A stretch of DNA of 64,000 nucleotides from Chara braunii (Eukaryota > Plantae > Charophyceae). Shown one piece after another: positions 23,961 through 64,000 of the stretch (positions within the stretch are counted from its first letter, which is position 1; every line of letters starts with the position of its first letter). Position numbers and translations under genes: made by a program. The notes below the pieces were generated by a model. The model saw only the letters and a program-made list of their open reading frames with translations, was not told the origin of the DNA and searched no databases. The stretch covers positions 1,767,086 through 1,831,085 of the forward strand of contig BFEA01000027.1 of assembly GCA_003427395.1 (NCBI GenBank), in the 5' to 3' direction.

Positions 23961-24124
23961 GCAGAAAAAAAAAAAAAAAAAAAAAGTCTGCCAAGAATGT
24001 TACTGAACAGCGAACAGTGAATAGTGACCACTCTTTTGCTCTAGAGATCCTCCAACGCGGAAACATGAAAAGAAGTTCAAAAAAGCTGTTTCACTTTTCT
24101 TTCTCAATAAATAATTTGGGATTA

Positions 24125-24224: not shown

Positions 24225-24231
24225 TGCTTTA

Positions 24232-25603
24232 TGTTACGATCCTGGCCACTTTTGAAGTCCACAATCATCAGAAAGTACAATGTTGTCCAATTGCGAAAAG
24301 AAATGAATGAACTTGAGCCCAATGNCGTCCAATTGCAAAAGAAATGAAAGAACTTGAGAGGAGAGAGAGGGAAANAAGAAGAAGAAGAATTAAGAAAGAA
24401 GAAAGAGATGATGTACTCCAGCATAGACCAAAGACAAAGCTCTTCTTCTTCGCTCAACAACCTCCTCCTCTTTATCTCCTCCTCTCTTATTCAACAATAA
24501 ATAAACAATAATAATGTTGAACAGCTGAACCAGAATCAATGTCCGAATCCCACTTCTACTGCAGGCACAAGATGAGGTCCACCATAGCCATGGCAGCCCT
24601 TCTTCTTCCTCCACATACAGGCCGAGGCTATGGCGGACAACTGAGGCCTCAGCCTCCGGTACNAAAGACAACCCCAAGCAGCTACACCGCTGCCCTTCTT
24701 CAAGCTCATCACCCAGCAGCTATACCGCTGCCCACTCAACCGCCATGCCTGACTCTGTCCGAGCTTCCTTGATGCGGCACTACCCCCACTGGGGCCTTCC
24801 TGATGCAGCGCCTAGCAAGGAGATAAAGATGGTGTCTACCATAGCCAGTAAGTACCTCGCCACTCTCCTCCTTGGTCCCCTTCTCCCTCCTCCTCCTACC
24901 GGTAGAGCTCCACCATAGCCAAGGTGGAAGCTCCCGGCTTCTTCCTCCCAGCAGCGCTGTAGTGCCCAGCGCTACACCACCTAGCGCTCCAGCAGCGTGA
25001 CGCCCAACTCGCACACTGAAGAATGAGGCGGAGCTCTAGCCTCCGCCTCTAGATATAGCGGCCTGCTTGCCTCTTGGGCGGTGACTTCCAGGCCGCTCGG
25101 CCTCTCCAAGCAACCGGTACTTCCTCCGTTTCGGAGGGAAACATCATTGCAGACCCTGATATTACCCGTACAGGCTCTAGACTCAGACTGGTTGGACTGG
25201 TACCGGCCTAGACCTACCCTACCGCTACTGGACTCTAAAAATGCCAACTGCAGTGGGGTGCAGTATCGGCCTACCGGCCTACTTGAGTGTTTTTCCCCTA
25301 CCCCAAGGGCCTCAGGGCCGCTAGCTCCGCCACTTCAGTGTTTTTCCCTGCTACAACCCTCAATGCCACGGCCACAGGTAAGTACCGCCCCTACGGGCCT
25401 ACCAAACAAGCAATTACCCTTGCGGGTCACACACGCACTCATACCGACAAGCACTCAGACAGGCATGCAGGTCACAAGCACACACCCAGAGACAGACTTA
25501 GAAAACACAGCAGAATGCGGGAATCTCATCAAGGCATCCATTCCATCGGCAGAACTTCAGAAATCAGCAGTGTTCTCAGTCTGTGTTTTGACGGGTCATT
25601 ACA
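24232..25603 (-). repeat. 3' LTR of the chromovirus
   Basis: TGTTACGATCC...GGTCATTACA; near-identical to 32100-33580 outside the gap. Confidence 0.95.
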
Positions 25604-25644: not shown

Positions 25645-28600
25645 TCAATCAGAGTCCTTGCATAGTGCATCATAGGCGTAGATAGCAAAGAGAGATCGCG
25701 CGTGTTCCGTAGGAGTCAGGGTAGCAGTGAATTTTGGTTGCTGTTCAGCACTTATCAACCGTTCATAGGCATTCACGACACGCGGTGCACTCTGCAGCAA
25801 GTCTTTCCTAGCAATCCAATAGAAATCGTCCAACGGATGGTACAGAAAATGGACTTTGTACTGTCTGTTTCTTCCCTTCCCACTGTGTTCGACAATCCTA
25901 TCAACCTCATGTCCACCATTGATTGCACGGGGAATCATTGACTCTCGGTATTTGAAAGTCTCAGGTGATTCATACGGAAACAACTTTGACGCATGAAAGA
26001 CTGGGTATGTGCGCAAATGTGCAGGCACATCAATCGTGTAAGAAGGACCGAAGGAATCACTTCCTACCTGGTTCAAGACCTGCCACGGACCGTAGTACTG
26101 AGGAAGAAGTTTTCGTGATACACCTTCTTCTTCAGAAAACTCAGACATTTTGACCCAAACATAACTTCCCATTGTGAAAGGCGCAGGCTGGCGCTTCTTG
26201 TTTGCATGTTTGATCATGGCACTGCGTCGCCTTTCCATAGCTGCGACAGCAACCTTGAGCAACCGATCGTACTTAGCGCTGTAGCCTGGCTGGCCAGGTG
26301 TCAGACCAGGAGGCTGTTCCGGGAACAGGTAGGATAGAGGATTGCGAATTTTCCATCCAAGATGCAGTCGGTTAGGCGTCATCCCGGTGGAAGAGTGGAT
26401 GGAGTTGTTATACAACCCCTGCACGATTGGCAATTCCTCATCTCAAGAGTTCTGATCAGGCACAATTAAGGCTCGGAGAAGTTGTATCACCGTCTGGTTG
26501 ATCTCCTCGGCCAGTCCATTGGCTTCGGGATGTCGACCAGTTGTCATCTTGAGTTTCATGTCATAGACCTGGGAGGTGAAGTCCTTCCATTCTGCGCTTA
26601 TGAACCTAGTGTCCCGGTCACTCACAAGAGTTTCCGGGGGCCCACACTGCAGAATGTATCTTTTGTGAAACTCTTTGATAACAAGGTCAGTTGGGGCATG
26701 AGGTGGTAGTGGAACACATTCAAAAACTTCGAAAAACGATCGACAATCACCATAACTTGGGAATAACCGTTTCTGCTCTTCTTCCCCATGTCCGTGAAGT
26801 CAATAGAAACAGACTCCCCCGGACCGTCAGGAATAGGAAGAGGGTGCAGCAGCCCATAAGGCTTCTGCCGAGACGGTTTAATGCGTTGACAAACTTCACA
26901 CTCAGCCACAAACCTTCGCGCCATCCTTTTCATACCAGGCCACACAAACTTTTCCAACAGATTCCCGTATGTCTTCTCAACACCGAAATGTCCACTCCGG
27001 CCATGAGCCAAATCCAAGAAGTGAGTGATGATTGGCTCATGGTTGGGTACACACAACCGGTCATGCTTACCGTAGCGTCGGAAGAGAAGGCCCTTACAGT
27101 CATGGAAATCAGGCTGACTACTAGGGTCAGCCCGAATCTGCTCAAGGATGGGACTGAGTTCCGGATCCGTGGCAGTGTGCTCAATGAGTTCCTTCTGTAA
27201 GTCCTTGCGAAGATCGTAGGAAACCACTAGGCAAGTCATGTACTCAGGGTGGCGAGACAAAGCATCCGCAACACGATTATAGCAGCCTTTCTTGTGTTTT
27301 AGTTCAAAATCGTACACATCAATCTCATGCAGCCAGCGGGTCAGCGTAGTTGATGGGTTTATCTGTGTCTAAATCCACTTCAAAGTCTCATGATTCGAGA
27401 ACACTTTGAAATGGCGACCCAAGAGGTAGTGTTTCCAATGGTCTAGTGCCTCTCTCAAGGCATAGAGCTCTCTCATGTAAGTGGAGGCAGCTACCTTGTG
27501 GCTGGGCATGNGTTTGCTGTAGTATTCCAGCGGACGTAAACCATCACCATCATCTTGCTGCAGCACTGCACCAATCCCATACAAACTTGCATCCGTAGTT
27601 ACTACGAATGTAAGCTTGGGATCTGCAATGCGGAGCACCGGATGACTCACCAAAGCCTCCTTTAGTGCTTCGAAGGTTGTCATGCACTCCTCATCCCATG
27701 TATAGGACACATTCTTGCTGGTTAGTCTAGACAATGGACGGGCAATGATTTAGGCACAAACTTACGGTAGTACGACGCAAGACCAAGAAAAGAATGCAAC
27801 TCGCGGACATTCGCAGGTTGGGCCCAGTTTTGAATGACCTCAACCTTGGTTGCCTCGGGCTCTAGGCCTGCAGCAGACAACCGATGTCCAAGGTAGATGA
27901 CGCTGTCCCTCCCAAACTCAGATTTCTCCAAGTTGAGATGGAGTTGCGCGTCCTTGAGGATCTGCATCACTTCCTCAAGGTGTCTCATGTGCTCCTCCAT
28001 TGATTTGTTGAAGATAAGAATGTCATGCAGATATACAACAACAAATCGGTTGATCTGATTGCGAAACACTTTGTCCATGAGACTTTGAAAGGTGGCTGGT
28101 GCATTCGTGAGACCGAAGGGCATAACTGTAAACTCATACAGCCCATCGCGAGTTTTGAATGCAGTTTTGTGTTGTTCTGCAGGTTCGACCTCAATCTGGT
28201 GGTAGCCATACTTGAGATCAATCTTGCTGAAGACTTTGCAACCACCTGCAGCATCAAGCAGATCATCGATACGTGGCAAAGGGTATGCATTCTTTCTTGT
28301 GATTCTATTCAATCTGCGGTAGTCAGTACACATCCGCAGTTTGCCTCCCTTCTTAGGAACAAACAACACTGGTGCACCAAATTCAGACTCACTGGGTTTG
28401 ATCCATCCCTTCCCAATCATCTCATCAATCTGTCGTCGCAACTCCTCCAATTCGCCTGAGCCCATTCGATAGACACAGCCTTTTGGAGGGGTGCTACCTT
28501 CAATCAACTCGATTTTGTGTCGGACCGGTCGCACGGGAACTCCATGCGGTTCGGCCAAGACCTCAGGGAACCGGTTGAGAAGGTTGCGGATTTCNGGTGG

Positions 28601-29009
28601 GATTTNNGGAGGGGGATCATCACTCTCAGGAGCCAGCATACCAGATTGCATAGGTGCAGCCAAGACAACAGATTTTGCAGCAGAATCACTTGGACTAGAG
28701 ATGGATTTAGTAGAGGTAGAAGTAGCTTCCGAGGTGGAAACAAACCAGCTTCGTTCTCCCTTGCGCGCGTTCTTGCTTCATATGAGCCCAGCGCGTCAAC
28801 AGAGCATGGAAGTCAATCTCTTCCGAATCTACCCAAGGCTCTTTATATAGGATGTGGATTTTCTCAGCCTTGGAATCAGCATCAGATGGGGTCTTAGGAG
28901 AAGTTTGCTGAGTGGGATCAGAATCCAGAGAAGGAGTGATACTTACATGTTCAGCCTCTCCATCTGTAGAGTGTGCCGATGATGCCTCTACCCCCGTTGT
29001 TGGTTTCCC
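25645..29009 (-). pseudogene. pol: Disrupted pol: RT, RNase H, integrase, chromodomain
   Basis: LRMCTDYRRLN, MPFGLTNAPATFQ, YLHD (YLDD mutated), TDAS, H..H/CEVC zinc finger, SIDF, SDRD, GPW and chromodomain, split by frameshifts and stops. Confidence 0.93.
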
Positions 29010-30655
29010 TGCTGCAATCTAAAGCATTGTTGGACTGAATGTCCCAGTTTGGTGCAATGCAGGCAAACCCCTTTCTTCACCCTGTGTTTCCACTCGCTTT
29101 CACTGATCCGAAGATCTACCCATGGTTTTGTGGCAGGATTTTCCGGTTTGGGTGGAATTTTTGCCCCCTTAGGAAGAAGAATAGTGTTAGTGTTGTTCTT
29201 CATTGTGGTCCTTGGTCCCTTACTCTTAAAGGCAGTCTTCTTAAAGGCATTCATGGATTCTTCATCATTCACATACTCAGACTCATGGGCTGACAAAGAG
29301 CAAGATGCCCCGCAGTCTTGCGCTTGATCGTCATCAAGAGAAGATTCATCTACGAGGGTCTCCTCTTCAGCCTCAAGCAGATCATGTGTTGCAAAACGGT
29401 TGCTGCCTGAAAACCGTTTGCGGCTGGTGGCCTTTTTGCCACTTGATCCACCCGGGAGGTCTTGTGCCTCCAGCTTGACTAAGTCAAGCATGCGGGTAAG
29501 CCAATCTGTATATCCGCTGAGCCCGAGCCCTAGGCGATCTTTTAGAGTAGAGGGGACTGTTCCTTTTATCACATCCAAACAGGACTGCGCAGTCATCTCC
29601 AGATCCGGAGTAGCAAAGAGTTTACTCACATACTGCTGCAGAATGTGCATGGTGCCGGTCCACTTGATGTGCTTGAGTTTATCAAGCTTGAGTCTTGCTT
29701 TAGCTGCAGCATGTGGATCAGCGTATTGTTTAATCAAGAGATCCTCAAATGCGGCAGTAGGCGTAACCTTCAACCATTTGTTCAGGTCTATTCTCTTATA
29801 GCCTGATTGGACAGCTTGGGTTTCCAAGAAACCTCTCACGACGGGCTCCACATTGGTCCCTAGGATAGACGACTGAGTGGACGGGGGTGTCCCCAACACG
29901 TCAAAGTAGGATCGCATGGAGCTGATCCAAGACTCGACGTCGTCCTTTCCGTCATACTTGGACGGAATCTGCGCCGCCTTCCTGTCGATGTAAGCAAAGC
30001 TGCCGCCTGGCCCAGCCATTGCTGGGTCCGGGCCCGGGGCTGCAACAGTTCCAAAAGTCCCTGCACCACCACTTGCCGCTGCGGCAGCAGCAGCAGCAGC
30101 AGCAGCGGGGTCTGGACCTGCTGCAGATCCACTTTGGCTGTTAACCACACTCAAAGAAGAAGAAGAAGTAGAAGGAGAAGAAGTAGACGTAGTCAGAGGA
30201 GCAAAACTGGACTGACACGCAGCATTGGAGGCAGGGTAGGTGAGTGAAGAGACGATTTGAGCCTGCTGCGAACTAGCAAACTGTTGCAGCTGATCGCGGT
30301 GCTGCTGCGCCATCTTGGCCATGTCTTCGCGCAACTCCTTGAGCTGCTTAAACACCTGTGCGAGTTGGCCAGTATGGTCCTCAGCAACCCTAACCCCTGC
30401 TAAGTCTCTGAGGAGGGGAACCGTTTTCTCTTCTACCTCCTCATCAGTCAGAGCGGACACGGTGCTAAGGACGGCCTCGTGAGCCTGCACCTTATCCTTT
30501 CTCTCTCTCTCTTTCTCTTCCTCCTCCCTCTTCAAGGCTTTCTCGTAGAAGAACTGATACTGCGGTTTTTCTGCCTCAGGGGCAGTGTCCATTTGCAGTT
30601 TCCAATCTGCTGCAGATGCCATGATGGAGGATGAGGGTGTCAGTAAGACTCTCAA
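28988..30655 (-). CDS. gag: Gag (capsid domain plus CCHC zinc knuckle)
   Basis: Open 555-aa ORF containing IPSKYDGKDDVESWI and CLHCTKLGHSVQQC. Confidence 0.9.
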   Translation of the reverse strand: MRVLLTPSSSIMASAADWKLQMDTAPEAEKPQYQFFYEKALKREEEEKERERKDKVQAHEAVLSTVSALTDEEVEEKTVPLLRDLAGVRVAEDHTGQLAQVFKQLKELREDMAKMAQQHRDQLQQFASSQQAQIVSSLTYPASNAACQSSFAPLTTSTSSPSTSSSSLSVVNSQSGSAAGPDPAAAAAAAAAAASGGAGTFGTVAAPGPDPAMAGPGGSFAYIDRKAAQIPSKYDGKDDVESWISSMRSYFDVLGTPPSTQSSILGTNVEPVVRGFLETQAVQSGYKRIDLNKWLKVTPTAAFEDLLIKQYADPHAAAKARLKLDKLKHIKWTGTMHILQQYVSKLFATPDLEMTAQSCLDVIKGTVPSTLKDRLGLGLSGYTDWLTRMLDLVKLEAQDLPGGSSGKKATSRKRFSGSNRFATHDLLEAEEETLVDESSLDDDQAQDCGASCSLSAHESEYVNDEESMNAFKKTAFKSKGPRTTMKNNTNTILLPKGAKIPPKPENPATKPWVDLRISESEWKHRVKKGVCLHCTKLGHSVQQCFRLQQGNQQRG

Positions 30656-32098: not shown

Positions 32099-32099
32099 A

Positions 32100-32864
32100 T
32101 GTTACGATCCTGGCCACTTTTGAAGTCCACAATCATCAAAAAGTACAATGTTGTCCAATTGCGAAAAGAAATGAATGAACTTGAGCCCAATGCCGTCCAA
32201 TTGCAAAAGAAATGAAAGAACTTGAGAGGAGAGANNNNNNNNNNNNNNNNNNNNNNNNNNNNNNNNNNNNNNNNNNNNNNNNNNNNNNNNNNNNNNNNNN
32301 NNNNNNNNNNNNNNNNNNNNNNNNNNNNNNNNNNNNNNNNNNNNNNNNNNNNNNNNNNNNNNNNNNNNNNNNNNNNNNNNNNNNNNNNNNNNNNNNNNNN
32401 NNNNNNNNNNNNNNNNNNNNNNNNNNNNNNNNNNNNNNNNNNNNNNNNNNNNNNNNNNNNNNNNNNNNNNNNNNNNNNNNNNNNNNNNNNNNNNNNNNNN
32501 NNNNNNNNNNNNNNNNNNNNNNNNNNNNNNNNNNNNNNNNNNNNNNNNNNNNNNNNNNNNNNNNNNNNNNNNNNNNNNNNNNNNNNNNNNNNNNNNNNNN
32601 NNNNNNNNNNNNNNNNNNNNNNNNNNNNNNNNNNNNNNNNNNNNNNNNNNNNNNNNNNNNNNNNNNNNNNNNNNNNNNNNNNNNNNNNNNNNNNNNNNNN
32701 NNNNNNNNNNNNNNNNNNNNNNNNNNNNNNNNNNNNNNNNNNNNNNNNNNNNNNNNNNNNNNNNNNNNNNNNNNNNNNNNNNNNNNNNNNNNNNNNNNNN
32801 NNNNNNNNNNNNNNNNNNNNNNNNNNNNNNNNNNNNNNNNNNNNNNNNNNNNNNNNNNNNNNNN

Positions 32865-32935
<71 letters not shown>

Positions 32936-33580
32936 CGTGCCTTGCCGCATGGCAGTTGGATCGATAGAGTCCAACCTTCGCCTCTAGATATAGCAGCCTA
33001 CTTGCCTCTTGGGCGGTGACTTCCAGGCCGCTCGGCCTCTCCAAGCAACCGGTACTTCCTTGGTTTCGGAGGGAAACATCATTGCAGACCCTGATATTAC
33101 CCGTACAGGCTCTAGACTCAGACTGGTTGGACTGGTACCGGCCTAGACCTACCCTACCGCTACTGGACTCTAAAAATGCCAACTTTGTCTTTTTCTGCTC
33201 GGCCTCCAGTACCCCTCACGCCAACTGCAGTGGGGTGCAGTATCGGCCTACCGGCCTGCTTGAGTGTTTTTCCCCTACCCCAAGGGCCTCAGGGCCGCTA
33301 GCTTCGCCACTTCAGTGTTTTTCCCTGCTACAACCCTCAATGCCATGGCCACAGGTAAGTACCGCCCCTACGGGCCTACCAAACAAGCAAGTACCCTTGC
33401 GGGTCACACACGCACTCATACCGACAAGCACTCAGACAGGCATGCAGGTCACAAGCACACACCCAGAGACAGACTTAGAAAACACAGCAGAATGAGGGAA
33501 TCTCATCAAGGCATCCATTCCATCGGCAGAACTTCAGAAATCAGCAGTGTTCTCAGTCTGTGTTTTGACGGGTCATTACA
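32100..33580 (-). repeat. 5' LTR of the chromovirus (contains an N-gap and a (GA)n tract)
   Basis: Same termini as the 3' LTR; adjacent to the PBS. Confidence 0.95.
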
Positions 33581-33673: not shown

Positions 33674-33850
33674 TGTTTTTACTAAGATGAGTGCAATTCC
33701 CACGCAAGTGGTGCTCCCCACCAATAGACTGAAGCCATCCCCTGGCCTGCTAGTGGTGTGTGTTTGTACCACCTCCACTAGCACGGGCCGGTAGATGTTT
33801 TTGTTTTTCCTTTTTTTTTAAGCACAAGTCCCACACATAAATATGAAAAG

Positions 33851-33941
33851 GTCCTTCGGTACATCCGTTAAAATTGGAACAATACAGAGAAGATTAGCTT
33901 GGCCCCTGCACAAGGATGACATTGATAAACCAAGAAATGGT
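33851..33941 (+). pseudogene. U6: U6 snRNA copy
   Basis: High similarity to plant U6, including the ACAGAGA box; catalytic-region substitution and no T-terminator. Confidence 0.88.
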
Positions 33942-34093
33942 AGGAAGGGGGGGGGGGGGGGGGGAGGGGAACGTAAATATGGAAAGAACTTTAAAGAAGT
34001 TAAAAAAAAACAAGTAGATCCTCCCACACACAAACATGACAAGTTTTTCCCAAAAAAAAAAAAAAAAGGAAAAACATGAGAAGTTGAAAAGAG

Positions 34094-34608
34094 CTAAGCT
34101 GGGCCGTCGCCCGGTCAGGCATGTCCGGGCCAGCTGTGCCGGGGGGGATCGCCCAGCAAAACCAGGCGGGTCAAAAAAGAGGGAAGGATCTCCAAAAAAA
34201 AGAAACTGACTTCAGGCCGGGACTGGGCTCGGCCTGAACAGTCAGAATCCGGCCTTACCTTCCATTTCGGTGGTGGGTCACCCAGGAGTGTTTGAGGGGT
34301 ATAAGTTACTGTAAACAGTGACTAGAGGGGTTTAAAAGGGTGTATCTTACCTCATTTCTCCTCATTTATTTTTTATCCTAAAATTAATGTTGAATTTCGA
34401 GGAGACCCTCAGCCAAAAGTTGCTTGTACTGCAATTTTATACAACATTTTTTTTCCCAGATTTTTTTGAATGTTCTGAATTTTTTTTTTTTTTTAATATT
34501 ATGCACTGGGGCTTCCCGGGACCCTGCCCGGCCACTGCCCGGCCCGGGCCGCCTGGGAGGGTACCCAGGCGACCTTCCCCCAGCCGGGCCGCCTGAGGAC
34601 CAGCCTAG
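34094..34608. mobile_element. hAT-type MITE
   Basis: TIR CTARGCTGG, perfect 8-bp TSD GAAAAGAG. Confidence 0.88.
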
Positions 34609-40430: not shown

Positions 40431-41043
40431 TCAGGGTGCATGAGCACAGTACTGACTGTCGTTGTGTGTATGAAAGCAGAAATGTGTGTGTGCGCACTTG
40501 TTTTGTTTCAAAAGGGCACAGCATCTTCGAACTGACCCGCCTCAGAAGAATTCAGCATCATTTTTAGAAATTTCTTACCCATCTGATTCCATTGGGATTT
40601 GAATTTCAAACTCAGGTCTGTGTTTCAACTTTCAACAGTTCATTAGCGTACCGACTGAACAGGCCAGCTGGTAAGTTGCACATTGTTGAGGCATGCGCAG
40701 CAGTGGCAGTTTTTTATGCACCCTCCATCCCCCACCGCGGAGAGAAGACAATGGTGGAAAAAAAAAAAAAAAAAAAAGAAGAAGAAGATTTTCAGTTTTT
40801 CACTATAAGGTCCTCATCCACTCATAACTTTCAAATCCATCATCCTAAGCCATGGGATGCATCAAACATATTAATTACTAGACTACTAGTCAGATACCAA
40901 GAACTGCAAAAGTCGAGATAACAACAGGAGAGAGGACCCTCTTGTTGATCTTCTTCTCTTCTTGGTGGCTGTCAATTACACAAGTACACAAGAAGCAGCC
41001 CACTACTTTTTTTCCGTCAAACTTCTTGTTTTTTTTTTTAAAT

Positions 41044-41142
41044 AAAAAAGGACCATTCCTCAATTTATGCATGTCATCCTTGCGCAGGCGCCATGCTAAT
41101 GTCCTCTACAGCGTTCACATGTTGACGGATGTCATAAAGGAC
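41044..41142 (-). pseudogene. U6: Degenerate full-length U6 copy
   Basis: ATTAGCATGGCGCCTGCGCAAGGATGAC...AATGGTCC followed by a T-run; ACAGAGA box destroyed. Confidence 0.85.
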
Positions 41143-42768
41143 ACTGTGAAGTTCTTTCTATCCATTTAAATGATGGGGGAAATGCAAATATGGAAGTCTA
41201 TGTATCTGATCAATAGGAAGGCCGTGGACGTCAGTTTTCGCAGTGTACAGAGTTATCATCGGGAATATCAGGAATGCATGTTCCTGCATTCCCAGCCAGA
41301 TTCAGTCACACATATGGTCTCGTTGTGAGAGTTGCACCTAGCTCAGATCCTTTCGTTACAAGAAAATGGCACTTTCCTAAAAGCTAAAACTTAGTAGAGC
41401 AACGAACTGAGGGTAAGCTCAGAAATTCAGATCCAGTTCTCACCATTTGATTTGTCTGTTACTTTCCGTTTTTACCTTTGGTATGATCCTTGCCATCTTT
41501 GAAAAAAAACAATTACAAACAAAAAGTTGATAACTTGATATCCATAAGGACGATAACTTTCCTTTTTTCCGTTTTAAATTTCGCATGATGACTAGCAGAG
41601 TACCATCTTCGACTTTCCGTCCCTTTGAATACTGGCGTTACTTCATGTCTGGTGAAGCTATTTCCACAACAGTATCTTGTGCATGCATCTCCACCATTAG
41701 AGTCTGTGAATCCGTGGCCACCACGATGATCTTTTATTAAGCTACTATTGTGCATCGCACCCATCCGACAAGCATTATCTAAGAGACGGGAAAAAAGGAG
41801 GGGGGGGAAATAAAAAGGCAGAATCGGAAGGAATTAATAAACCTACGGTAGATATTCTTTCGGGCTAGCGCTTCCACCTCCTTGGTTTGATCATCATAAG
41901 GCGCACGCCCGCTGTACCCCTCCTGACAATCCAAATGAATCACAGGGGGGGTCAATCCCCTTTCTGCAGTAACCGGTTGATCCGTGTTCATTGCACAGAC
42001 CATCCTCATTGTACTCTAGATTGGTCTGTTGTGGCTCCTTCGATTACTCTGTGCTTCTCACGAACAACCCTTCCCCCCAGGGTTCCATTCCCTTTGGTAA
42101 ATAGGACTTCTTTTTTGGGATTTTCTGAGTTCTGCTTTATGAGGTATTCTTTTATAGGTATTTCTTTCATGGATTTCTCAAATTTCCTCCCTTTTTGAGC
42201 TCTTTTGGTTCCTGGTTTCTAGTTTAAAATAGAAACAAGGTAGGATGGCTGGTTATATAGCATTTTTCTGGCTTATTGGGTAGGCCTGGGTACTTTAGAT
42301 AGTCTCACACTGCCCACTGATAACCTTAAAAGCTTATGGCCCTCGGTTCATCTTAAACCACCAGTACTCGGCCTCAGCCTTGCAGCAAACAACTCGTCGC
42401 CACAAGAAGCAAAAGGCTGGCTCGGGGCAGGGTCGGAGCGTCAGAAGGTTTTCAAAATTTTGGGCCCATGTCAAATCCGTACGTCCCAAAAAACAAAACA
42501 AGCTTTGCCCGTGATTGCAGTTGGATACACTTTTTGGAGTACTGCCCTCAGTGAGGGCACTTCGGCAGAACGAGGAACACGGGGAGCACGACTGTCAGAA
42601 TGACAAAAAAAGAACAAACAAAAAAAAAAAGCCCCAAAAAACAAAACAAGCTTTGGCCGTGATTGCAGTTGGATACACTTTTTGGAGTACTGCCCTCAGT
42701 GAGGGCACTTCGGCAGAACGAGGAACACGGGGAGCACGACTGTCAGAATCACAAAAAAAGAACAAAAA

Positions 42769-44125
42769 TGTTATGATCCTGGCCAATTTCGAAGTATACA
42801 TTCATCAAAAAGTACAATGTCGTCCAATTGCAAAAAGAAATGAATGAACTTGAGAGGAGAGAGAGGGAAAGAAGAAAGAGTAAGAAAGAAGAAGAAGATG
42901 ATGTACTCCAGCATAGACCAATGACAAGGCTCTTCTTCTTCGCCAACCAATCTCCTCCTCCTTATCTCCACCCCTCTTATTCAAACAAGAAATAACAATA
43001 ATAATGTTGAATGTCTGAACCAGAATCAATGTCCGAATCCCACTTCTACTGCAAGCACAACATGAGGTCCACCATAGCCATGGCCACCCTTCTCCTTCCT
43101 CTCACATATAGGCTGAGGCTATGGCGGACTACTGAGGGCTCAACCCTCCTGTCCAAATGACAACCCAAAGCAGCTATGCCGCTGCCACCCTCTGCAAAGG
43201 GCAACGCAAAGCAGCTATGCTGCTGCTCACTAGGCCGCCATGCCTGCCACTGCCCCGAACTTCCTTGGTGCGGCACTACCCCAACAGGGGCCTTCCAGAT
43301 GCAGCGCCTAACAAGGTGATGAAGATGGTGTCCACCATAGCCAGGTAGGTACCTCGCCACTCTCCTCCTTAGTCCCCGTCTCCCTCCTCCTCCTACCGGT
43401 AGAGCTCCACCATAGCCAAGGTGGAGGCTCCCGGCTTCTTCCTCCCAGCAGCGCTGCTCCAGCCAGCGCTCCAGCAGCGCGTCGCCAAACTTGCACACTG
43501 AAGAATGAGGTCGGGCTCTTCCTTCGGCCTCTTGATATAGCGGCCTACTTGCCTCCTGGGCGGTGACTTCCAGGGCGCTCGGCCTCCCAAGCAACCGGTA
43601 CCTCCTCCCTTTCGGAGGGAAACATCATTGCAGACTCTGATATTGCCCGTACAGGCTCTAGACTCAGACTGGATGGACTGGTACCGGCCTAGACCTAGCC
43701 TACCGCTACTGGGCCTCAAAAAATGCCAACTTTGTCTTCTTCTGCTCGGCCTCGAGTACCCGGCACATCTACTGCTACTGGGTGCGGTACCGACCTACCT
43801 GCTACTTGAGTGTTTTTCCGCTGCTCTAAGCACCGCGGCCCCCTGGCTCCGCTACTTGAGTGTTTTCCCTGCTGTAACCCTCAATGCCACGGCCACAGGT
43901 AAGTACCGGCCCTACGGGCCTGCCAAACAAGCAAGTACCCTTGCGGGTCACACACACACCCGTACCGACAAGCACTCAGACAGGCACGCAGGTCAACAAA
44001 CACGCACACACACACAGACTTAGAAAACTCAGCAGAATGCGGGAATCTCAGCAAGGCATCCATTCCATCGGCAGAGCTCCAGAAATCGGCAGTGTTCTCA
44101 GTCTGTGTTATGGCGGGGCATTAAA
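42769..44125 (-). mobile_element. Solo LTR of the same chromovirus family
   Basis: Colinear diverged homolog of 24232-25603, with no PBS or PPT beside it; A-run flanks. Confidence 0.9.
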
Positions 44126-50000: not shown

Positions 50001-50124
50001 TAACATCTACCTGGGGATACTAGCGCGGGTGGTAAAAGCATCCTCCTGTAGTATGACCCCATGGTAGATGGCTCCAGTCTATTGGCGGGGAGCAGCACCT
50101 GCTGGAAAACGGGTCCAGCGTCCC
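50001..50124 (-). mobile_element. Retroposon 3' tail, same family
   Basis: Same two-pseudoknot motif plus a long CATCTACC...GGTAGATG hairpin. Confidence 0.75.
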
Positions 50125-51486
50125 ATCCAAGGGGGATTCCTCGAAACTCTGGGGGGACTCCTCTGAATGTTTTCACATCCGTCTGCAAAAACTTTGTAGG
50201 GTGTGTGATTAGGAAACCATGAATCGACAACATTCCTCCAAAATAAGCCTTTTCTAGGATAGTGGAGTGAAACCCTTAGTATTGACTGGGACCTTGTTCA
50301 CAGATCGAGAAAATCAGGACATCTGAAACTGACTGCAATTGGACTAGATGTGGCCAATTTCCCTCCCTATTGTGAACTGCCACTGAGTCTTCCGGTTGCC
50401 AAACATGTGGGCATATTGTGGACGAGTACACAATGAGGTGTCCCTACTTCGAGCATGTTGTATCATCACCGCCAGAAATGGACATCTTACTGTGATAGGT
50501 GCTCTATGGGCTTTATGCGGGCATATTGTGGCTAAGAACGCAACGAGTTGTCCCTTTTTAGTAGGAAGATCGCATCACCCCCATAATGCAGAAGGACAGA
50601 ATCTAAGTCGGTTCCTCAGACCAGCGCTCAACCAAGGACCAACATTCCCCGGTGAGGGGCAGCTGAGCGCCTCAATAACATCCAACAGTGGGCAGTTAAA
50701 CCACCAGTTCACCCGGACCTATTTTGATGAACCAAAATGTGCATTTGCTGAGCCTAACAGTGACCAGTACCGGCTCTCAGAAAAATAAAGGTGGTACCTG
50801 TACCAGCCTTTGTATGAATGAAAAGTCTGGACTGCTGGCCACCAGATCGGACGAGAAACAAGCCTGCCATCATGTTCCACATCAATGCCCACGCCTCCTC
50901 CTCCTCCTACTACTACTACTACTCCTACTACTGTTATTAGTACTACGACTTCCACTACCACTGATACGACTACTACTAAGCCAAACAGAAGGTGATAGCT
51001 TCTTGTTGGCAGCAATCCAGAGTCTGTCATTATAGCTACATATGGACTGAAACTTGCTCCAGATACACCTATAATGACCAGTCGTTCTATACGGCCGAAG
51101 GCAGCGCCTTGTTTTTCTTTTGTACATATGTCATAAATGTCTTGTCATATTCGCTATACACTCAAAAAAAGCCTGACTGAGCCAGACTGTTACGTCGGAC
51201 TTTCACCGACTCATCAGGAGTTTGAACCCTGATTGTCTGCCGAGGATCCATTTGACTGATGGATAAGGACTCACCACATCGCCCAGAGTAAGCGATACCC
51301 CTGAGAAAAGTGGTAGACTTTACTCACACCAACCTTGCAATCCTATCAGACTGCCGGTCCAAACCCCTGACAAGAACAGTAGTAAGTCTGAGAAGCTAAT
51401 CCGACACAGTCATAAAACCCACTCTACACACCCACTCAGCCATGGACCACCCAATGGCATGATGTCATAAGTGTGTGTGTGTGTGT

Positions 51487-54590: not shown

Positions 54591-54702
54591 TGGCCGAAGA
54601 GCCTGGCTCATCCCCTCAGGCCGGGGCTAATGATGTGAGGGACGCTGGGCCCGTTTCCCAGCATATAATGAAATCTTCCTTTTTCTAAAAAAAGGGAAAA
54701 AA
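54591..54702 (+). mobile_element. 5'-truncated copy of the pseudoknot-tail retroposon
   Basis: PK1 at 54639-54662, A-rich tail, 11-bp TSD AGAAAATTGCC. Confidence 0.75.
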
Positions 54703-55736
54703 AGAAAATTGCCCCTCTTTGGAAACAGACAGAGACAGTTTTTAGGGTAGATTAAAACAAAACTGGTACCCACATAGCCAGCAGTGGTCCGACGTGCACG
54801 ACTGATTAACTCTAGTCCCGACTACATCATAGTACAGTGCCACAGAGTTCGGCGCTGCTCCCACCAATTCCTGCTTGAAGCACATGTCACGCTGGAGCTG
54901 CTCTTGGCGTCCACCAGGTACGTCGCCAGCTTGTCCTCCACGGCCTTCAACTTCCTCCAAGGATCTCTTTTTCTCGTGCCACCCTCCTTCACCTCCCTAG
55001 AGCTATGGCACTTGTCTTCCTCCTCAGTCGAGCTATGGCTGGCGTTGGTTGCATACAAGGTGTTGTGCACTCCTGCAGTGCTGAGTTTGACCTAGCCCTC
55101 CTGCCGTGCTGTGTCGACCTAGTGCTCCTGCAGCCTGGCAGCATTCTGCATCTGGGTCTCTCCTTATATCGAAGAGCCAGATCGCTGTTCGCCTGGTAGG
55201 CAATGCCTTCTGAAGCCTTCTGACCATGGCCATGCCCCTACCCGGTCCTCGTCTGAGCCTGACTGGGCGTTCACGGCCCGATCTCAGGGCCTATTGTTCC
55301 TCTGTCCACAGCTGAGAGGCCCAGACGGCCTCACACTTTTTGGTTTTGTTTTATTTCATTTGATGTTTTGTTTTTCCATTTTATTCCATTTGATCTATTA
55401 TAGTATTACCTAGGCTGGGCTGTTGCCCGGCCAGGGACGCCCGGGCCAGCTGGGCAGGGAGGGATCACCAGGCAAAACCAGGCAGGTGAAAAAAGAGGGA
55501 AGGATTCCCCCCCCCAAAAAAAGGCCCGGACTGCAGTTGGCCTGAGCAGTCAGATTCCGGCCTTACCTTCCATTTCAGTGGTGGGTCACCCAGGGGTGTT
55601 TGAGTGGTATAAAATTACTCCAAACAGTGACTAAAGGGGTTTAAAAGGGTCTATCTTACCTCATATTTCCTCATTTATTTTTCTTAAAATTAACAAGGAA
55701 TTTCAAGGGGAACCTCAGCCAAAAGTTGCTTGTACT

Positions 55737-58050
55737 TTGGGGTGTATAATTAGTCTTTGTGGACTGGTAATTCATTGACTATGTTTGTCGACAATTAGGG
55801 TAGCGATCAGGGTTGTCAGGCGGGGGCCCCCAGGGGCAAAGCCGGGGTAGCGGTTTGACCCCCGGACCCCCACTGCAGGGGTGCCCCACCCCTGCCCCGC
55901 CCAAAACACCCCCGTCGGTGCCCCGCCCCTCGCACCCCCGCCNNNNNNNNNNNNNNNNNNNNNNNNNNNNNNNNNNNNNNNNNNNNNNNNNNNNNNNNNN
56001 NNNNNNNNNNNNNNNNNNNNNNNNNNNNNNNNNNNNNNNNNNNNNNNNNNNNNNNNNNNNNNNNNNNNNNNNNNNNNNNNNNNNNNNNNNNNNNNNNNNN
56101 NNNNNNNNNNNNNNNNNNNNNNNNNNNNNNNNNNNNNNNNNNNNNNNNNNNNNNNNNNNNNNNNNNNNNNNNNNNNNNNNNNNNNNNNNNNNNNNNNNNN
56201 NNNNNNNNNNNNNNNNNNNNNNNNNNNNNNNNNNNNNNNNNNNNNNNNNNNNNNNNNNNNNNNNNNNNNNNNNNNNNNNNNNNNNNNNNNNNNNNNNNNN
56301 NNNNNNNNNNNNNNNNNNNNNNNNNNNNNNNNNNNNNNNNNNNNNNNNNNNNNNNNNNNNNNNNNNNNNNNNNNNNNNNNNNNNNNNNNNNNNNNNNNNN
56401 NNNNNNNNNNNNNNNNNNNNNNNNNNNNNNNNNNNNNNNNNNNNNNNNNNNNNNNNNNNNNNNNNNNNNNNNNNNNNNNNNNNNNNNNNNNNNNNNNNNN
56501 NNNNNNNNNNNNNNNNNNNNNNNNNNNNNNNNNNNNNNNNNNNNNNNNNNNNNNNNNNNNNNNNNNNNNNNNNNNNNNNNNNNNNNNNNNNNNNNNNNNN
56601 NNNNNNNNNNNNNNNNNNNNNNNNNNNNNNNNNNNNNNNNNNNNNNNNNNNNNNNNNNNNNNNNNNNNNNNNNNNNNNNNNNNNNNNNNNNNNNNNNCCC
56701 AACCCCGGCCCCGCAGCACGATCGTGATGAGCACCCCCAGCCCCGCACCCCTTGCCCCGACCACGCACCCCCGCCCCAGCTGCCAGCCAACCCCGGCCCC
56801 GCACCCCGCTGGGCCCCGCCCCCGGCCTCGCGCCCACACTACCCCGGGCTCACGAGGGTGGGGTGTAGCCCCGGGGGGGGGGCCAAGGTCAGGCCAGAAC
56901 TGCAATATTGCAGTTTGGCCCAGGGGGTGCAGGCTGCAGCTGCGCACCCCCCTGTTTTTGTTTTTTTTTTAATTGTTTTTGATTTTTTTTATTTATTTAT
57001 TTTTTTTGCCAGGGCCAGGGGTGCCGACCCCTGGCCCCCGGGACCCCTGCCGGTGCTCGACAAACCACCGATACTTGCTACCATCTTCACCCGAAAATAA
57101 CACCCACGCGTTATATTCAACTTACCCTAAAGAGATTAGATTTTCGTTTTTACTCACTTTTTTTCAAATAAAACGCCCCTTCAAATAGAATGCCCGGGCG
57201 TTATATTTGAATGGGGTTTTGACTTCCAAAGGCTATAATTTGCCTTGAGTTTTCGTTTTTATTTTTTATTTCCGAGTTCATAAGGAATTCTGAAGTGACC
57301 CTCCGCCAAAAGTTGGTCGCATTCCAATCCTGGACAACATTTTTTTTTTGAGAAATTTTTGATTTATTTTTTTTCGAAAATTTGGGGCCTCACAGAAATC
57401 ACCACAAATTTACTGAATATAACGCCCCGGCGTTATATTTGTACACAACGCCCAGGCGTTATTTTCGGGTGAAGACGGAAGGTAGAATTGGTGCTCATCA
57501 CGTGATTTTCAGAGATTGGCGAGGATCTGCTACCTTGCTGCTGGTTGGCGGTGTTAATAGAGGTATACAGAGTGCAGAGTGTGATTTTGTGAATGGTTGT
57601 TGATTTTGCCCGTGGGTTGGTCCATCACGTGGGGTGCGGATTTGGATTTTAGTTGGGATTGCTGATTGGCGGTGAATAGGGTATAGAGTTGGAACTTGTG
57701 AATCATTTTGGGATTCTGTCCGTGGGTAATTAGGATTAGATCATTGACAATCTTGTTTTTGTGCGTTTGGTTGGTGATTTGTTACCTGGCTTGGATTTTG
57801 CTAGATTAGGGTTGCTTAATAATGGCAGTTTGGATTAGGATTTCGGTTTCTTAAATTAGGGAACACGATTTTTGTTTTGGGGTTGCGATTGGGATTGGCT
57901 GTCATGACCTTGTGGGGCTGCGGTAGGGATAGGTTTGGCCGAGAGTGCCTTGCTTAGCTGGTTTGGCCGCAGCAAATGATGTAAGGGACGCCAGGCCCGT
58001 TTCCTGGTTATATGCTATCTTCTTTGTTCAGTATAAAAAAGAAAAAAAGG
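55737..58050 (+). mobile_element. Pseudoknot-tail retroposon inserted in a hAT MITE, itself containing nested elements
   Basis: 15-bp TSD AAAGTTGCTTGTACT (55722-55736, 58051-58065), PK1 at 57985-58008, A-rich tail. Confidence 0.8.
57081..57478. mobile_element. pogo/Tigger-like MITE
   Basis: About 32-bp TIR CCRTCTTCACCCGAAAATAAC; a related end lies at about 17950-18019. Confidence 0.8.
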
Positions 58051-59019
58051 AAAGTTGCTTGTACTGCAATTTTACACAACATCTTTTTTTTCCAGATGTT
58101 TTTGAATTTATTTTTTTCTGTTTTTTTCAATATTATGCACTGGGACTGCCCCGGACCCTGCCCGGACCCTTCCCGTCCTGGGCTGTGCCCAGGAGGGTAC
58201 CCAGGCGACCTTCCCCCAGCCGGGCCGCCCAGGGACCAGCCTAGAGTATTACTTTTTTTCATTTTATTTTTTTAAGCACCTCTTAATTACCAAGGAACCC
58301 GTGTTTTCTTTTTTTCTTTTTTTTCTTTTTTTTAACCATCCGCCTCAGCCAAGTAAGAGAGGTGACAAGAGCATCCTCCAGTAGCCCGTGTTCAAGGCTG
58401 TGCATCTATTCTCCCCGAAGCTCCAAGAGGGGCCAAGGGACTCCAGCCTGTAACCCCAGGCAGAGAGCCCCGCCCTTGTAGTCAGCGCTGCTGAGCAAGC
58501 TAAAACCACTGGCTCTAGAACTCGCTGCAGGTACATAACTCCAGTCAGCCTACCCATGTTGGTCATACATGGGCACATCGCCCAGTCTAGCCTATATCAT
58601 TTTATTTTCCATTCTTTTATATATTCTTTTTTTTCATTTTTACTATTTTGTTTAGTTATTTATTTGACCTTTTCTTTTCTTTTTTTTGCCATTTTTCCTT
58701 TTCTCCCACAAACACGCAAGCGTTCATTTCCCTAGTCTAGGTCCCACTTCTTTACGCCTGACGGTTCTTCCTAATCTAGATTCAGACACAAGGAAAAAGG
58801 CCCCTTTTTATTATTGTTTTTTTTTTTTGAAGTCCAGGGTCTTGTAGAGGCCAGTTACTAGTCTCACATTGATTGCCGGAAGATATTTTTCTTTGAGCCA
58901 GAATCAGTAGGTTTTCATGCCTGAGCTGCACAGCGTAGGTGCTAGGTTCTATTCCCGTTGCCGTCACTTTCAGTGGCCTGAGAAGGATTGGTGGCCACGA
59001 CCAGTGAACACTGGTAATT

Positions 59020-60279: not shown

Positions 60280-62406
60280 CTGCGGGGGACCGGCCGGCAA
60301 GGCCCGGCCTGCTCTCCACACAACACGTCAAGGAAGGTGACCTGTCGTCGACGTGACCTTCACGTTGGACCGTCTGCATGCCAGGTGGCGTGCAACGTGG
60401 TGCCCGTTTGAGAGGGGTGTGTCCGGTGGAAAGGGGTGTTACTAGTATGAGTTGAGGTGTGTGACGTGGCGTTGGTTTATTGCGGCTACGTGGTGTGGGA
60501 GGGAGATGGAATACAAAATTCTGCTTGGGGAGGAGCAGCAGGGTATCCCTCCTTCCCTGTTGCTCAAGGAGGAGCGCGATATATCTCGAGCGATGAGGAT
60601 GCTGGATCTCTATAAAAATCAAGTGGCGGAGATGCTAGAGCTTTTGACCAGTGAACATGGAAGCCTCCCACTAGAGCTCCTGCTGGAGAGTGAAGGGTTT
60701 CTTGATGAATGGGAAGCGGATATGATAACTAATTGCTCTTTGCATCCTCCACAACAACAAGACTGCTACGAAGTGACGCGGATGCAGCAGATATGCAAGC
60801 GTGCCTCTCGCTGTTTGAGAAGCTGCGGGCGAAGATTTCAATATGTCGGGCAACTTTTGATACCGACACAACTAACCTACCTCGGCTTTGTGATGGCGAG
60901 ATGGTTCGTGGGGTTGATTTCCATTCGGAAGATGCCCCCAACACGCAGCAAGCGAGGGTTGAGGTGACAGCAGGTCACAACTATCCTAATCTGGACTACG
61001 GAGACCGCACTGTGTGTGCCGACCTGCTGCTACTTGGAAGTAATCAACATAATGAAGGAGGAGGTGGTTTGAGCCGGTGCAATTTGGAAATAACGAACAT
61101 GACGGGGAAGGGGGCAGTCAACATGCCGCGGGGGGAGGAGGGTGCACTATGTGCACTGAGGGAGTGTTATTCGGAAACGACGAGCACGATGAGGAAGGGG
61201 GTATCCAGTATGACGTGATAGTGGAAGATGGTGAGCAAATGCATGCTGGTGTGATGCCTCGAGGCCACCACCACCCCTATGATCGACAACAAAATCAACC
61301 TTAGAACAACATCTTACAAAATCCAAACCTGATCAAAGTTCTTGGGAAAACTTTGGCATGATACCCTGTTTTCCCGCTGGAGGGGTTCCCTGCACCCCAT
61401 TCTGGTTTGGTGATGTGGAGGTCGCTGGTGACTTTGGAGGAGGTAAGTGCTCGGTGCTGTTAGGTATCTGTTTCTTCTGGGGATGGCTAGGGTTTCGTTT
61501 TGAAGACGGGAGGATGGAACAAACACTAAGGGAGGGGACAACTGTGATACAACAGACTTGGAATGAGGGAATGGTGAGATCAGGTGTTGGTTAGGCGGGT
61601 ACGGGCGGGGGAGAATTCGTCGATGTTGTACTCTACCACTGATGCTAGCATTACAATATGATCACAAAATAACGGGTGGAGCATTGGAGAGCTGGGAAGA
61701 GTGTCAGTTTGTTGATTTGCTCTCTATGAGGGTACGGGCGTGAAGCACATGAAAAGCTCCCTTGCATGATCACAACAGTATGGTAGTGGTAGTTTAGCCA
61801 TAAGGGGCTCTTGGCTTTTCACTCCGGGCACACTGATTACATGAAATACACATACTACTGATCTCTCAAGAAGAATTCGAGCCACTGATGTAGTCATAAT
61901 GTGTTCGCATATAACTCGCTCTCATGATTTGGGGGTGTGGACTGGGAAACAGTTGCTTGTAGGGTTACTTCCGGTAGGGACAGGGCGGTAGTTTCCTTGG
62001 GTAGGAGGGTTTCAGGGAAGCTTCACTCTGCAGAAGACCGGGGTGTAACAGCTGGGATTCTGCCACGTAACAGGGACAGGGTGGAATTTTAGTATGTTGG
62101 TGCAATAGATGTAGATGATTCATTTGATAGCAATTGAAGATTGGTATTAGTCCACCTCTGAGATAGATGGGCAGTCAATCCCCTTGCGAAGAGGGCAATC
62201 AATGCTGCTCATCGTATATAACTTGGCATAATGGCATGCATAACACATCATCTGGCTCCTTGTTATGATGTGAAGGGACGCTGGACCCGTTTTCCAGCAG
62301 GTGCAGCTCCCCACCAATGGAACGGAGTCATCTAACGAGCGGGGATAGCAGAGGGGGTGTCTGCTCTTATCAGCACGTCCCATACACCCGGTCGATGTTC
62401 AAAAAA
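60280..62406 (+). mobile_element. Probable second long member of the family: GC-rich leader, frameshifted orphan ORF (about 60506-61304), UTR, pseudoknot tail
   Basis: Tail at 62275-62406; overlapping ORF pieces; no TSD found and the 5' limit is approximate. Confidence 0.5.
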
Positions 62407-63240
62407 GGGCCCGAATTCTTACACTGTAAGGGCACCCTAACTGAGCCAGGGTGATTAATTTACCCTAACTCTTTTCTTCGTTCCACAGCCCGTAAGGATT
62501 ACAAGGGCTTTATTTAAAAAAAAAAAAAAACAGGAAGACCATACACTTACCCGCCATTACATCTCAGGTGAGGAGGGCCGGGTGTCAGGACCTCGGCCTG
62601 TCGGGCAATCAGTAGGGTCCCACCCTTACATTTCTAGTCACCTCCGGGGGCTCCCTAGAGATTTTTGTCGTTTTGCCTGGACCGCCCTCATTTTGTAAGG
62701 GCGGACCCTAACAGCCGAGAATGTGAAAACAAGCTTAGGGTTCGATTTTGTTGTCATTAGGGAGTGGTGGAACAATGATTTTGTAAGGATCCTTACATTT
62801 GTAGTGGTGTCGAGCAAGCCCCCTACTCAGATCTTATCAAGATGCTAGGTTGGCAGCAGGGTGTGAAATTCTGAGTGCGCTTCAACAATTTCCTGATGAG
62901 AAAGTCTTTAAAAATCAGAGAAGTAGATTAACTGCTGGTCTTCAACTACAGCCTGGCCTTCAATGACTGGAGCAACATTGTTCCTACTGTACCTTTAAGA
63001 CCTCTGCCGGATTTCCCTGATCCCTCCCCTCTCTCAAACCTTTACTTAGTTCCCAGGTCGTGGTATGCGTACGAATGATCTGGAAAATCCCTTGCATTGT
63101 CGGTGAATGTTAGGGTCAGCCTTTCTCAAGAACAAGTGTGATTGAGTGCTAGGAAGATACGTATATCTGGCGCCCTCTCAGGGTGAGGAGGCACAAGACT
63201 CAACACTCAGTTGCAGATTTCCCACTGGCACTGATCAGAA

Positions 63241-63410
63241 GGGACGCTGGGCCAAGTTCCCAGTTTGTGCTGTACCTCGGTCCTTCATTGTTTCTCATGG
63301 GACGCTGGACCCAGTTTCCAGCAGGTGCAGCTCCCCACCAATAGAATGGAGCCCCGATACGTCAGGTAGGAGTGCATGCTCGTATCATCACTCCTACCTG
63401 ACGCCACGGG
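63241..63410 (+). mobile_element. Retroposon 3' tail with duplicated PK1 and a perfect 15-bp hairpin
   Basis: PK1 at 63241 and 63299, PK2, CGTCAGGTAGGAGTG/CACTCCTACCTGACG. Confidence 0.75.
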
Positions 63411-64000
63411 TCTTTCAAGGGAAAATATTTATTGAAATCTAAATGGGAAAAAATAATAAAATATAATAAAATTCTTGGTAGCAAAAAAAATGCATATTAT
63501 TTCCCATGTCGTGAACCTGTATGCACAAAACTTTTAGGTCCAGTGCTCCGGAGACAAGAATACGAATAGGTTTGTTAAACCACCAGTACCTACCGGTTGT
63601 CAAGACCCGACCCTAGAGCTACCGGTAGGCCTAACCTACAGCTACGGGGACGAGCCTCGAAGTACCGGTTGTCTCCTTTCTTTAGGAATTGTAGCATGAA
63701 TTACATATATAATTATAAACAATATGCATATAAATCTAATATGTCTATAATAGGAATTTAAGTGATATATTTAGAGTAATTTCATATTTTTTAGTTGTAT
63801 AAAAGTGCCTGTTTTTAGGATTGCGTCTTGGTTGCACGCAATCCTAAATCCAATTTTGAGATTGAAAATTTGAAAACAGCATTACGACGAGTCCTGAAGG
63901 ATTTAGGATTCCCCAGGCAAAATCGTCCTAAATTTTCCAGTAGCCCCCGACCTACTCAAAAATTTAGGATTCCCACGTTTCACGGACTCGTTGCGTCGTG

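Follow-up and report, generated by a model that had tools for sequence, protein, structure and literature searches.

A 64-kb stretch of the genome of the charophyte Chara braunii (64,000 nucleotides of contig BFEA01000027.1, hereafter the window) contains a recurrent structured motif that lies at the 3' end of retroposed elements, just upstream of their A-rich tails. This structured tail motif is real. Its full layout begins with GGGAC and a 6-bp hairpin, hairpin 1, whose 7-nt loop starts with CC(C) (together module 1). These are followed by a near-invariant 29-nt block (module 2, the second of two previously proposed pseudoknots, PK2), a long hairpin (module 3) and the A-rich tail; the conserved signal before the A-rich end amounts to approximately 53 bases. 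We favor the interpretation, to which we assign a probability of roughly 0.6, that the motif is a shared structured 3'-terminal region acting as a template-recognition tail of the stringent type, used by L1-clade long interspersed nuclear elements (LINEs) and by the non-coding elements that ride on their enzymes. Such a signal would be of a known kind, in a form apparently undescribed; no description of a Chara LINE tail was found in the literature searched, in which the Chara genome paper was not covered, and "undescribed" is therefore provisional.

Occurrence of the motif at the 3' ends of retroposed elements

Two covariance models were run over the window: one of the full module (modules 1 and 2), built from five full copies and used with filters off, and one of GGGAC plus hairpin 1 only. 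The first model matched the five full modules with scores of 81-87 bits (62265-62330, 63289-63354 and 2744-2809 on the plus strand; 50069-50134 and 3594-3659 on the minus strand). It also gave partial matches, with E values from 2e-7 to 0.011, at 20317, 3662 (minus strand), 33679, 63231, 54629, 57975 and 4-22, and a further weak match at 20254. The second model identified 12 hairpin-1 sites, including one at 20244 with an E value of 0.013. Together with a site at 33707 that has PK2 only, this makes 13 sites in 64 kb. Simple pattern counts, for which shuffles served as the null, were also elevated: the core 16-mer, with up to 3 mismatches, was observed 9 times against 0.58 expected, and the 14-mer GGGACGCTGGACCC 15 times against 4.1 expected.

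The first-pass annotation of this DNA had listed approximately 14 copies of what it took to be a tandem pseudoknot. Thirteen of these 14 sites were recovered by the two models. The site at 7194 was recovered by neither (E>10 with the full-module model and E>1 with the hairpin-1 model), is followed by a T run rather than an A run, and is interpreted here as either a look-alike or a copy in an advanced state of decay. The tandem arrangement itself, however, is not what recurs: both halves are present in only 5 of the 13 sites, 4 of which have the long hairpin too, while seven sites consist of hairpin 1 alone and one of the second half alone. Three of the seven hairpin-1-only sites are extra copies located 58-78 nt upstream of another hairpin 1. 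They lie at 3684-3707 on the minus strand (stem ACTGGG/CCCAGT), at 63241-63264 on the plus strand (GGGAC with GCTGGG/CCCAGT, 58 nt upstream of its neighbor) and at 20249-20272 on the plus strand, the last being the weaker copy with an E value of 0.013.

Three insertions bounded by target-site duplications (TSDs) of 11-15 bp carry the motif near their 3' ends. The largest is a 3.6-kb retroposed element on the minus strand (3565-7152), flanked by the 15-bp TSD AATCATAGCTCACCG and containing open reading frames (ORFs) in which no protein domain was detected. Its tail is a full module at 3597-3649, followed by 13 nt, A18 and the TSD despite the absence of a long hairpin, and the extra hairpin-1 module at 3684-3707 belongs to the same element. 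The second insertion, of 2.3 kb on the plus strand (55737-58050), has the 15-bp TSD AAAGTTGCTTGTACT and a paralogous empty site at 34369-34470; its tail consists of hairpin 1 only (57985-58008, GCCAGG/CCTGGT), then 26 nt and an A-rich run. The third, also on the plus strand, is only 112 bp long (54591-54702; 11-bp TSD AGAAAATTGCC) and likewise ends in hairpin 1 only (54639-54662), 24 nt and an A-rich run. Its identity to the 3' end of the 2.3-kb element is 74%, which makes it a 5'-truncated relative. The target of the 2.3-kb insertion is a short dispersed repeat (34369-34492; 55675-55736 plus 58051-58127), of which a further copy is found inside the insertion at 57262-57385.

An A run of at least 6 is found within 40 nt downstream of 7 of 10 terminal modules, compared with 4.9% of random positions (P ~7e-8). 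The inferred bottom-strand nick sites of all three TSD insertions end in T runs, as poly(A)-primed reverse transcription requires, and the module therefore forms part of the 3' end of RNAs that were retroposed. The earlier proposals that three copies have TSDs and that the motif marks the 3' end of the retroposed RNA are thus confirmed by the duplications themselves, the empty site, the 112-bp truncated copy and the adjoining A runs.

When the window was compared with itself, similarity between copies started at GGGAC and stopped after approximately 55-100 nt, the sequences upstream being unmatched. Mean pairwise identity was 0.88 for the module, 0.59 for the long hairpin and 0.56 for the 100 nt upstream, where random window segments aligned with the same program gave 0.50-0.52. 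The module is thus a 3' sequence shared by otherwise unrelated bodies.

RNA structure of the tail modules

Folding was examined in 13 aligned copies of hairpin 1, 10 of PK2 and 9 of the long hairpin; these copies are few and related, and the counts of covariation given here are not counts of independent events. Hairpin 1 is a well supported helix: 98.7% of its cells are paired, and both-sided changes occur in 4 of its 6 pairs (7 cells), a result matched in none of 500 column shuffles. Slid registers never gave more than one both-sided change. All five stem variants that had been listed (GCTGGA/TCCAGC, GCTGGG/CCCAGC, GCCGGG/CCCGGC, GCCAGG/CCTGGT and ACTGGG/CCCAGT) are present, in agreement with the covariation claimed for this stem.

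The same annotation had drawn modules 1 and 2 as two H-type pseudoknots, the first formed by pairing of the 5' GGG with CCC in the loop of hairpin 1, the second by GGTG with CACC and GCTCC with GGAGC. Complementarity is present in both cases, but no covariation was seen. For GGG:CCC, two pairs are invariant and the third is G-C in ten copies, G-U in one and unpaired in two, with no change in GGG. Given the hairpin, moreover, a 3-bp match persists in 53% of shuffles of the flank and loop. The minimum free energy structure contains instead a nested fold in which GGGA pairs with a downstream UCCC and GCUG with CAGC. This fold was rejected because hairpin 1 covaries, because the linker CA that the fold needs is variable, and because the hairpin-1-only tails retain GGGAC yet lack the UCCC partner. 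It follows from this last observation, the only one that speaks for the GGG:CCC pairing, that GGGAC is conserved for a reason internal to module 1.

For the second block, GGTG-NN-GCTCC-C-CACC-AATAGA(N)-GGAGC, an H-type knot can be drawn that has stems of 4 and 5 bp and loops of 2, 1 and 7-8 nt. Interleaved complementarity of this type is rare, arising in 53 of 20000 shuffles of the 30-mer. Within the two predicted stems no double-sided change was found in the 10 copies, a small set of decayed sequences; the one-sided changes comprise 3 that preserve a wobble pair and 6 that disrupt pairing. Conservation is lowest in the 3' strand GGAGC, with changes in 7 of 50 cells, while its partner GCTCC never changes. 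There is a single change in the 60 cells of loop 3 and none in the 5' strand of the second stem. Variability is greatest in the two-base linker (6 of 20), which fits a loop crossing a groove, as it would equally fit any spacer. The PK2 knot is plausible but unproven, a drawing consistent with the consensus.

The long hairpin differs in sequence from copy to copy and stays paired, as had been noted in the first reading of this DNA. All nine copies fold into one imperfect hairpin, and five are more stable than all 200 of their dinucleotide shuffles (z -3.7 to -8.2). RNAalifold gave 14 consensus pairs, of which 10 show compensated changes, beneath a conserved apical loop CUCKUAY closed by YUG/CAR. 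The base of the hairpin, CATC...GATGTT, is conserved in several copies. Stringent LINE tails classically look like this, with a stem that varies and a loop that is conserved. A hammerhead ribozyme was also considered, as CTGATGA occurs just upstream of some copies, and was rejected because no GAAA core or stem III follows.

Carriers of the tail and its putative role

The tails of the window are not attached to any recognizable LINE. No LINE domain was found when 33 distinct ORFs, taken from upstream of tails, from inside the TSD-bounded elements and from elsewhere in the window, were compared with Pfam; the sole match was a Gypsy reverse transcriptase (27722-28663, minus strand) unrelated to the tails. 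A tblastn search with a distant 1226-aa L1 ORF2 gave no match in the window, and neither a reverse transcriptase nor an endonuclease was detected upstream of any window copy. Therefore, the window tails sit on bodies that are non-coding or have decayed beyond recognition. Bodies without domains are as expected of non-autonomous riders.

Metagenome contigs were scanned with an exact 23-base pattern, which was found in two small contigs, BFBZ01011674 and BFBZ01009793, both in GCA_003427375.1, a deposit whose accession number is 20 below that of the Chara assembly GCA_003427395.1. BFBZ01009793 contains a full tail, with long hairpin and A run, that starts approximately 680 nt downstream of the last recognizable piece of a frameshifted, decayed L1-type ORF2. 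A piece approximately 230 nt further upstream matches the zf-RVT domain (PF13966; score 29.1 bits, cut-off 27.5, E 1.6e-6) and aligns to residues 1052-1117, at the C-terminus, of a 1226-aa protein with Exo_endo_phos and RVT_1 domains. This zf-RVT piece gave no word-based protein match and 8 weak representatives in an exhaustive search. BFBZ01009793 thus provides the only direct link, a thin one, between the tail and a presumed autonomous element of L1 type. As to which autonomous LINE shares the tail, the searches gave one decayed ORF2 with a zf-RVT match and no intact carrier. The L1-clade traits seen are the poly(A), the TSDs of 11-15 bp and the T-rich nick sites; the reverse transcriptase and endonuclease of a tail-bearing element were not seen.

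In the other contig, BFBZ01011674, two complete tails are joined tail to tail (271-420 on the plus strand and 428-546 on the minus strand), the minus-strand tail having no A run of its own and abutting A22 of the plus-strand tail. A Penelope-like element was considered for this inverted pair and rejected on account of the poly(A), the TSDs and the zf-RVT domain. One Chara protein was matched by a profile built from ORFs reading through the tail, and it led to a further tail copy in the Chara contig BFEA01000004. Six non-Chara contigs with zf-RVT or L1 ORF2 had no tail, a sample too small to limit the host range.

According to the interpretation that we favor, the element-encoded ORF2 protein, with its endonuclease and reverse transcriptase, would recognize the folded tail on the RNA and nick T-rich DNA. 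The T-rich 3' end thus released would anneal to the poly(A), and target-primed reverse transcription would begin just downstream of the module, so that "stringent" choice of template would be combined with poly(A) priming. Any RNA bearing the module would become copyable, which would explain why unrelated bodies have only this piece in common. In some copies module 1 is duplicated, and in others it alone precedes the A tail. That the tail is bound by protein and is needed for mobility we infer.

Tails of this type are known from other green plants. In a monocot L1 lineage the last 45 nt are conserved, with a compensating hairpin and kept loop bases, and are common to ZmSINE2/3 and to sorghum short interspersed nuclear elements (SINEs); the Chlamydomonas element L1-1_CR has approximately 80 nt in common with SINEX-3_CR, and both the monocot lineage and L1-1_CR end in poly(A) (Ohshima 2012, PMC3472496). 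The same author proposed that the ancestral green-plant L1 needed a specific 3' sequence as well as poly(A), a requirement that became relaxed later in the L1s of land plants (Ohshima 2012, PMC3472496). The Chara tail resembles those of LINE1-1_ZM and L1-1_CR in its apparent L1-clade affiliation, in having a conserved end (45-80 nt in those elements) before the poly(A), and in its apparent presence on both a LINE and non-autonomous elements. As in maize, a compensating stem carries a kept loop (UCU in maize, CUCKUAY in Chara), the maize hairpin being compared by its description. The Chara tail differs in sequence and in host, a streptophyte alga. Where the maize and Chlamydomonas tails have a single hairpin, it has three modules, the first of which may be duplicated or occur alone, and it includes a near-invariant 29-nt block with pseudoknot potential.

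Outside the L1 clade, eel UnaL2/UnaSINE1 and zebrafish ZfL2 have a conserved 3' stem-loop, common to LINE and SINE, that is needed for template recognition by the ORF2 protein (PMC1636434, PMC4176376). The mechanism proposed for Chara is the same, but those elements belong to the L2 clade, end in short repeats rather than poly(A), have a single hairpin and are experimentally proven. In the 3' untranslated region of the avian R2 element R2Tg of the zebra finch, a pseudoknotted 3' 67 nt is bound by the element's protein to start target-primed reverse transcription (PMC12222951). R2Tg is similar in that a small folded RNA, in its case including a pseudoknot, lies at the very 3' end. It differs from the Chara tail in its clade (R2), its restriction-like endonuclease, its site-specificity for rDNA and its lack of poly(A), and its pseudoknot is known from a solved structure, unlike the Chara knot, which is a drawing that the consensus permits.

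Since Chara is a streptophyte alga near the land plants, L1-type elements and non-coding riders with a structured tail before poly(A) would represent the intermediate state that Ohshima's model predicts, and the tail offers a concrete RNA with which to test that model. The modular layout may also serve as a natural experiment on which part the enzyme needs, given hairpin 1 alone in TSD insertions and a knot-like block and loop-conserved hairpin that are optional. In a very repeat-rich genome such as that of Chara, the module is in addition a simple marker for annotating the 3' ends of retroposons.

Several observations weigh against this interpretation. The tail is tied to an ORF2 by a single decayed fragment, on a small contig with a provisional organism label, and no intact autonomous LINE with the tail was seen in the window or in the loci examined. 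The abundance of the tail is uneven: four other Chara loci (93.7 kb of BFEA01 contigs around Gypsy reverse transcriptase genes) contained no copy, where approximately 19 would be expected at the density of the window (13 in 64 kb). The distribution is therefore strongly clumped, and the window is unusually rich. Genomic copies are dead on arrival, and their conservation mirrors that of the active masters only indirectly. The terminal modules at 33707 and 20327 and the copy on BFEA01000004 lack an A tail. Finally, the TSD-verified insertions with hairpin 1 alone demonstrate that modules 2 and 3 can be dispensed with in some cases, and a single recognition signal may be too simple; these insertions indicate either that module 1 suffices for at least one enzyme or that families use different partners.

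Among the alternatives, the likeliest, which we regard as possible though much less probable than recognition by an ORF2 protein, is that host factors read the module as a post-transcriptional element (one that serves the stability of the RNA or its resistance to exonucleases, the formation of its 3' end, nuclear export, or translation of the poly(A)-tailed LINE RNA) and that it is not a mark on a template for reverse transcription. Compact viral knots stall exonucleases or bind translation factors, and in Chara the 29-nt PK2 block, with its rarely occurring interleaved complementarity, is almost invariant even in its predicted loops, as would fit a sequence-specific protein site of any kind. 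Such a role does not by itself explain why the same piece stands at the TSD-flanked 3' ends of unrelated non-coding bodies, and a function in translation makes no sense for riders without ORFs. Nor does the motif match an Rfam family: at the gathering threshold only four U6 and one U2 were found in the window, and nothing relevant to the motif was found in 62200-63480 at E values up to 10.

It is rather unlikely that the module has no function, having spread through recombination or switching of templates at 3' ends, or descended from a recent common 3' end, and is conserved only through its youth. L1-type reverse transcriptases do switch templates; the tail is modular, with modules duplicated or missing, and the two tails joined tail to tail on BFBZ01011674 would fit such a process. 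However, the long hairpin adjacent to the well conserved module has diverged nearly to background and still keeps its pairing and its apical loop, and hairpin 1 changes by compensation, which together argue for constraint rather than youth.

We consider improbable a further reading in which modules 1 and 2 are indeed two stacked H-type pseudoknots forming a portable, family-independent handle, with hairpin 1 as the minimal handle, that is read by a host factor and not by the ORF2 protein. Chara retroposons would then have converged on a viral type of 3' end, and the comparison would be with the tobamovirus pseudoknot domain, which is read by a translation factor. The tobamovirus upstream pseudoknot domain and viral tRNA-like structures do share with the Chara tail consecutive short stems, drawable as stacked H-type pseudoknots, near a 3' end. 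They differ in that no similarity of sequence or covariance model was found and the Chara context is a retroposon, not a virus; the resemblance is one of topology only, as had been supposed from the start.

The exact start of homology at GGGAC would also be expected if the module were an independent, short SINE-like retroposon landing in or next to the tails of other elements, and a separate A-tailed insert of approximately 125 nt does lie in the A tail of the copy at 62275. This is very unlikely, as in all three TSD insertions the 5' TSD lies well upstream of GGGAC (by 48 nt, 2.2 kb or 3.5 kb), from which it follows that a longer RNA includes the module; TSDs around the module by itself were not found, and ARAGORN detected no tRNA-like gene or head. 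We find it scarcely credible that retroposons captured a virus-derived tRNA-like or upstream-pseudoknot-domain element, for which only the topological resemblance speaks: Rfam gave no match at gathering or at E values up to 10, there was no sign of aminoacylation-type features, and the one exact pattern match in IMG/VR is attributed to chance, as it falls in a coding region of a giant virus where the remainder of the motif is missing.

Individual copies and neighboring features

The copy at 62275, on the plus strand, illustrates the complete layout. Module 1 (62275-62298) consists of GGGAC at 62275-62279 and hairpin 1, with its stem at 62280-62285 and 62293-62298 and the 7-nt loop CCCGTTT. The proposed PK2 (62300-62328) reads GGTG-CA-GCTCC-C-CACC-AATGGAAC-GGAGT, and the long imperfect hairpin (62329-62399) has the apical loop CUCUUAU and ends in GATGTT, followed by A6 at 62401-62406. 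Directly after this A6 there is a segment of approximately 125 nt ending in A15 (62407-62532, plus strand) that has the look of a second retroposon, short and with its own A tail, inserted in this tail; it has GTAAGGGC..CCCTAAC-like pieces in common with 62690-62712. The neighboring plus-strand copy has a full 54-nt module, hairpin 1 plus the proposed PK2, at 63299-63352 and a long hairpin at 63353-63416 with a perfect 15-bp core, the apical loop CUCGUAU and z = -8.2; an A-rich stretch comes next.

Two other copies have the full module and the long hairpin: 2754-2869 on the plus strand (module 2754-2806, hairpin 2807-2869, then an A-rich tail) and 50002-50124 on the minus strand (module 50124-50071, hairpin 50070-50002). 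At 33707-33799 on the plus strand, a PK2-type module (33707-33735) and long hairpin (33736-33799) occur without hairpin 1, with T-rich sequence and a U6 gene downstream. A hairpin-1 module cut by the window edge (1-22, plus strand; GCCGGG/CCCGGC) is followed by 14 nt and A36. The hairpin-1 module at 20327-20350 on the plus strand has neither PK2 nor A tail; directly 3' of it, at 20387-20499, a perfect inverted repeat of 31 bp encloses a loop of approximately 50 nt (-75 kcal/mol, z = -10).

A second conserved block, AATC-CCCTGG..CCAGGG-YAATCAATGCTG, which forms a small hairpin, was observed at 62168-62216 and 1926-1974 on the plus strand and at 168-217 on the minus strand of BFBZ01009793. Its distance to hairpin 1 is approximately 60 nt at 62168, 790 nt at 1926 and 45 nt in BFBZ01009793, and it may represent an additional module in one group of families.

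The window includes three assembly gaps, N runs of 630-835 at 21819-22653, 32235-32864 and 55943-56697. The first two have long (TC)n/(AG)n microsatellites on their flanks; the third lies inside the 2.3-kb TSD-bounded element, whose body is therefore incompletely known. The Gypsy reverse transcriptase ORF mentioned above is 90% identical to Chara braunii CBR_g45514, and most of its next best matches are also from Chara. It belongs to the interior of a Ty3/Gypsy element (25645-30655, minus strand), in which a 555-aa ORF upstream of the reverse transcriptase has no Pfam match.

U6 snRNA genes or copies, with scores of 58-75 bits, are located at 12680-12784 and 33851-33951 on the plus strand and at 24120-24224 and 41042-41142 on the minus strand; U2 is found at 19358-19584 on the minus strand. 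Three of the U6 copies adjoin a repeated segment of 1.4 kb (24231-25601, 32099-33578 and 42768-44123; 97-99% and 68-93% identity). Just upstream of the U6 at 33851 there is a GTCCCACA...TATA-like stretch, and this U6 thus looks like a gene rather than a retrocopy.

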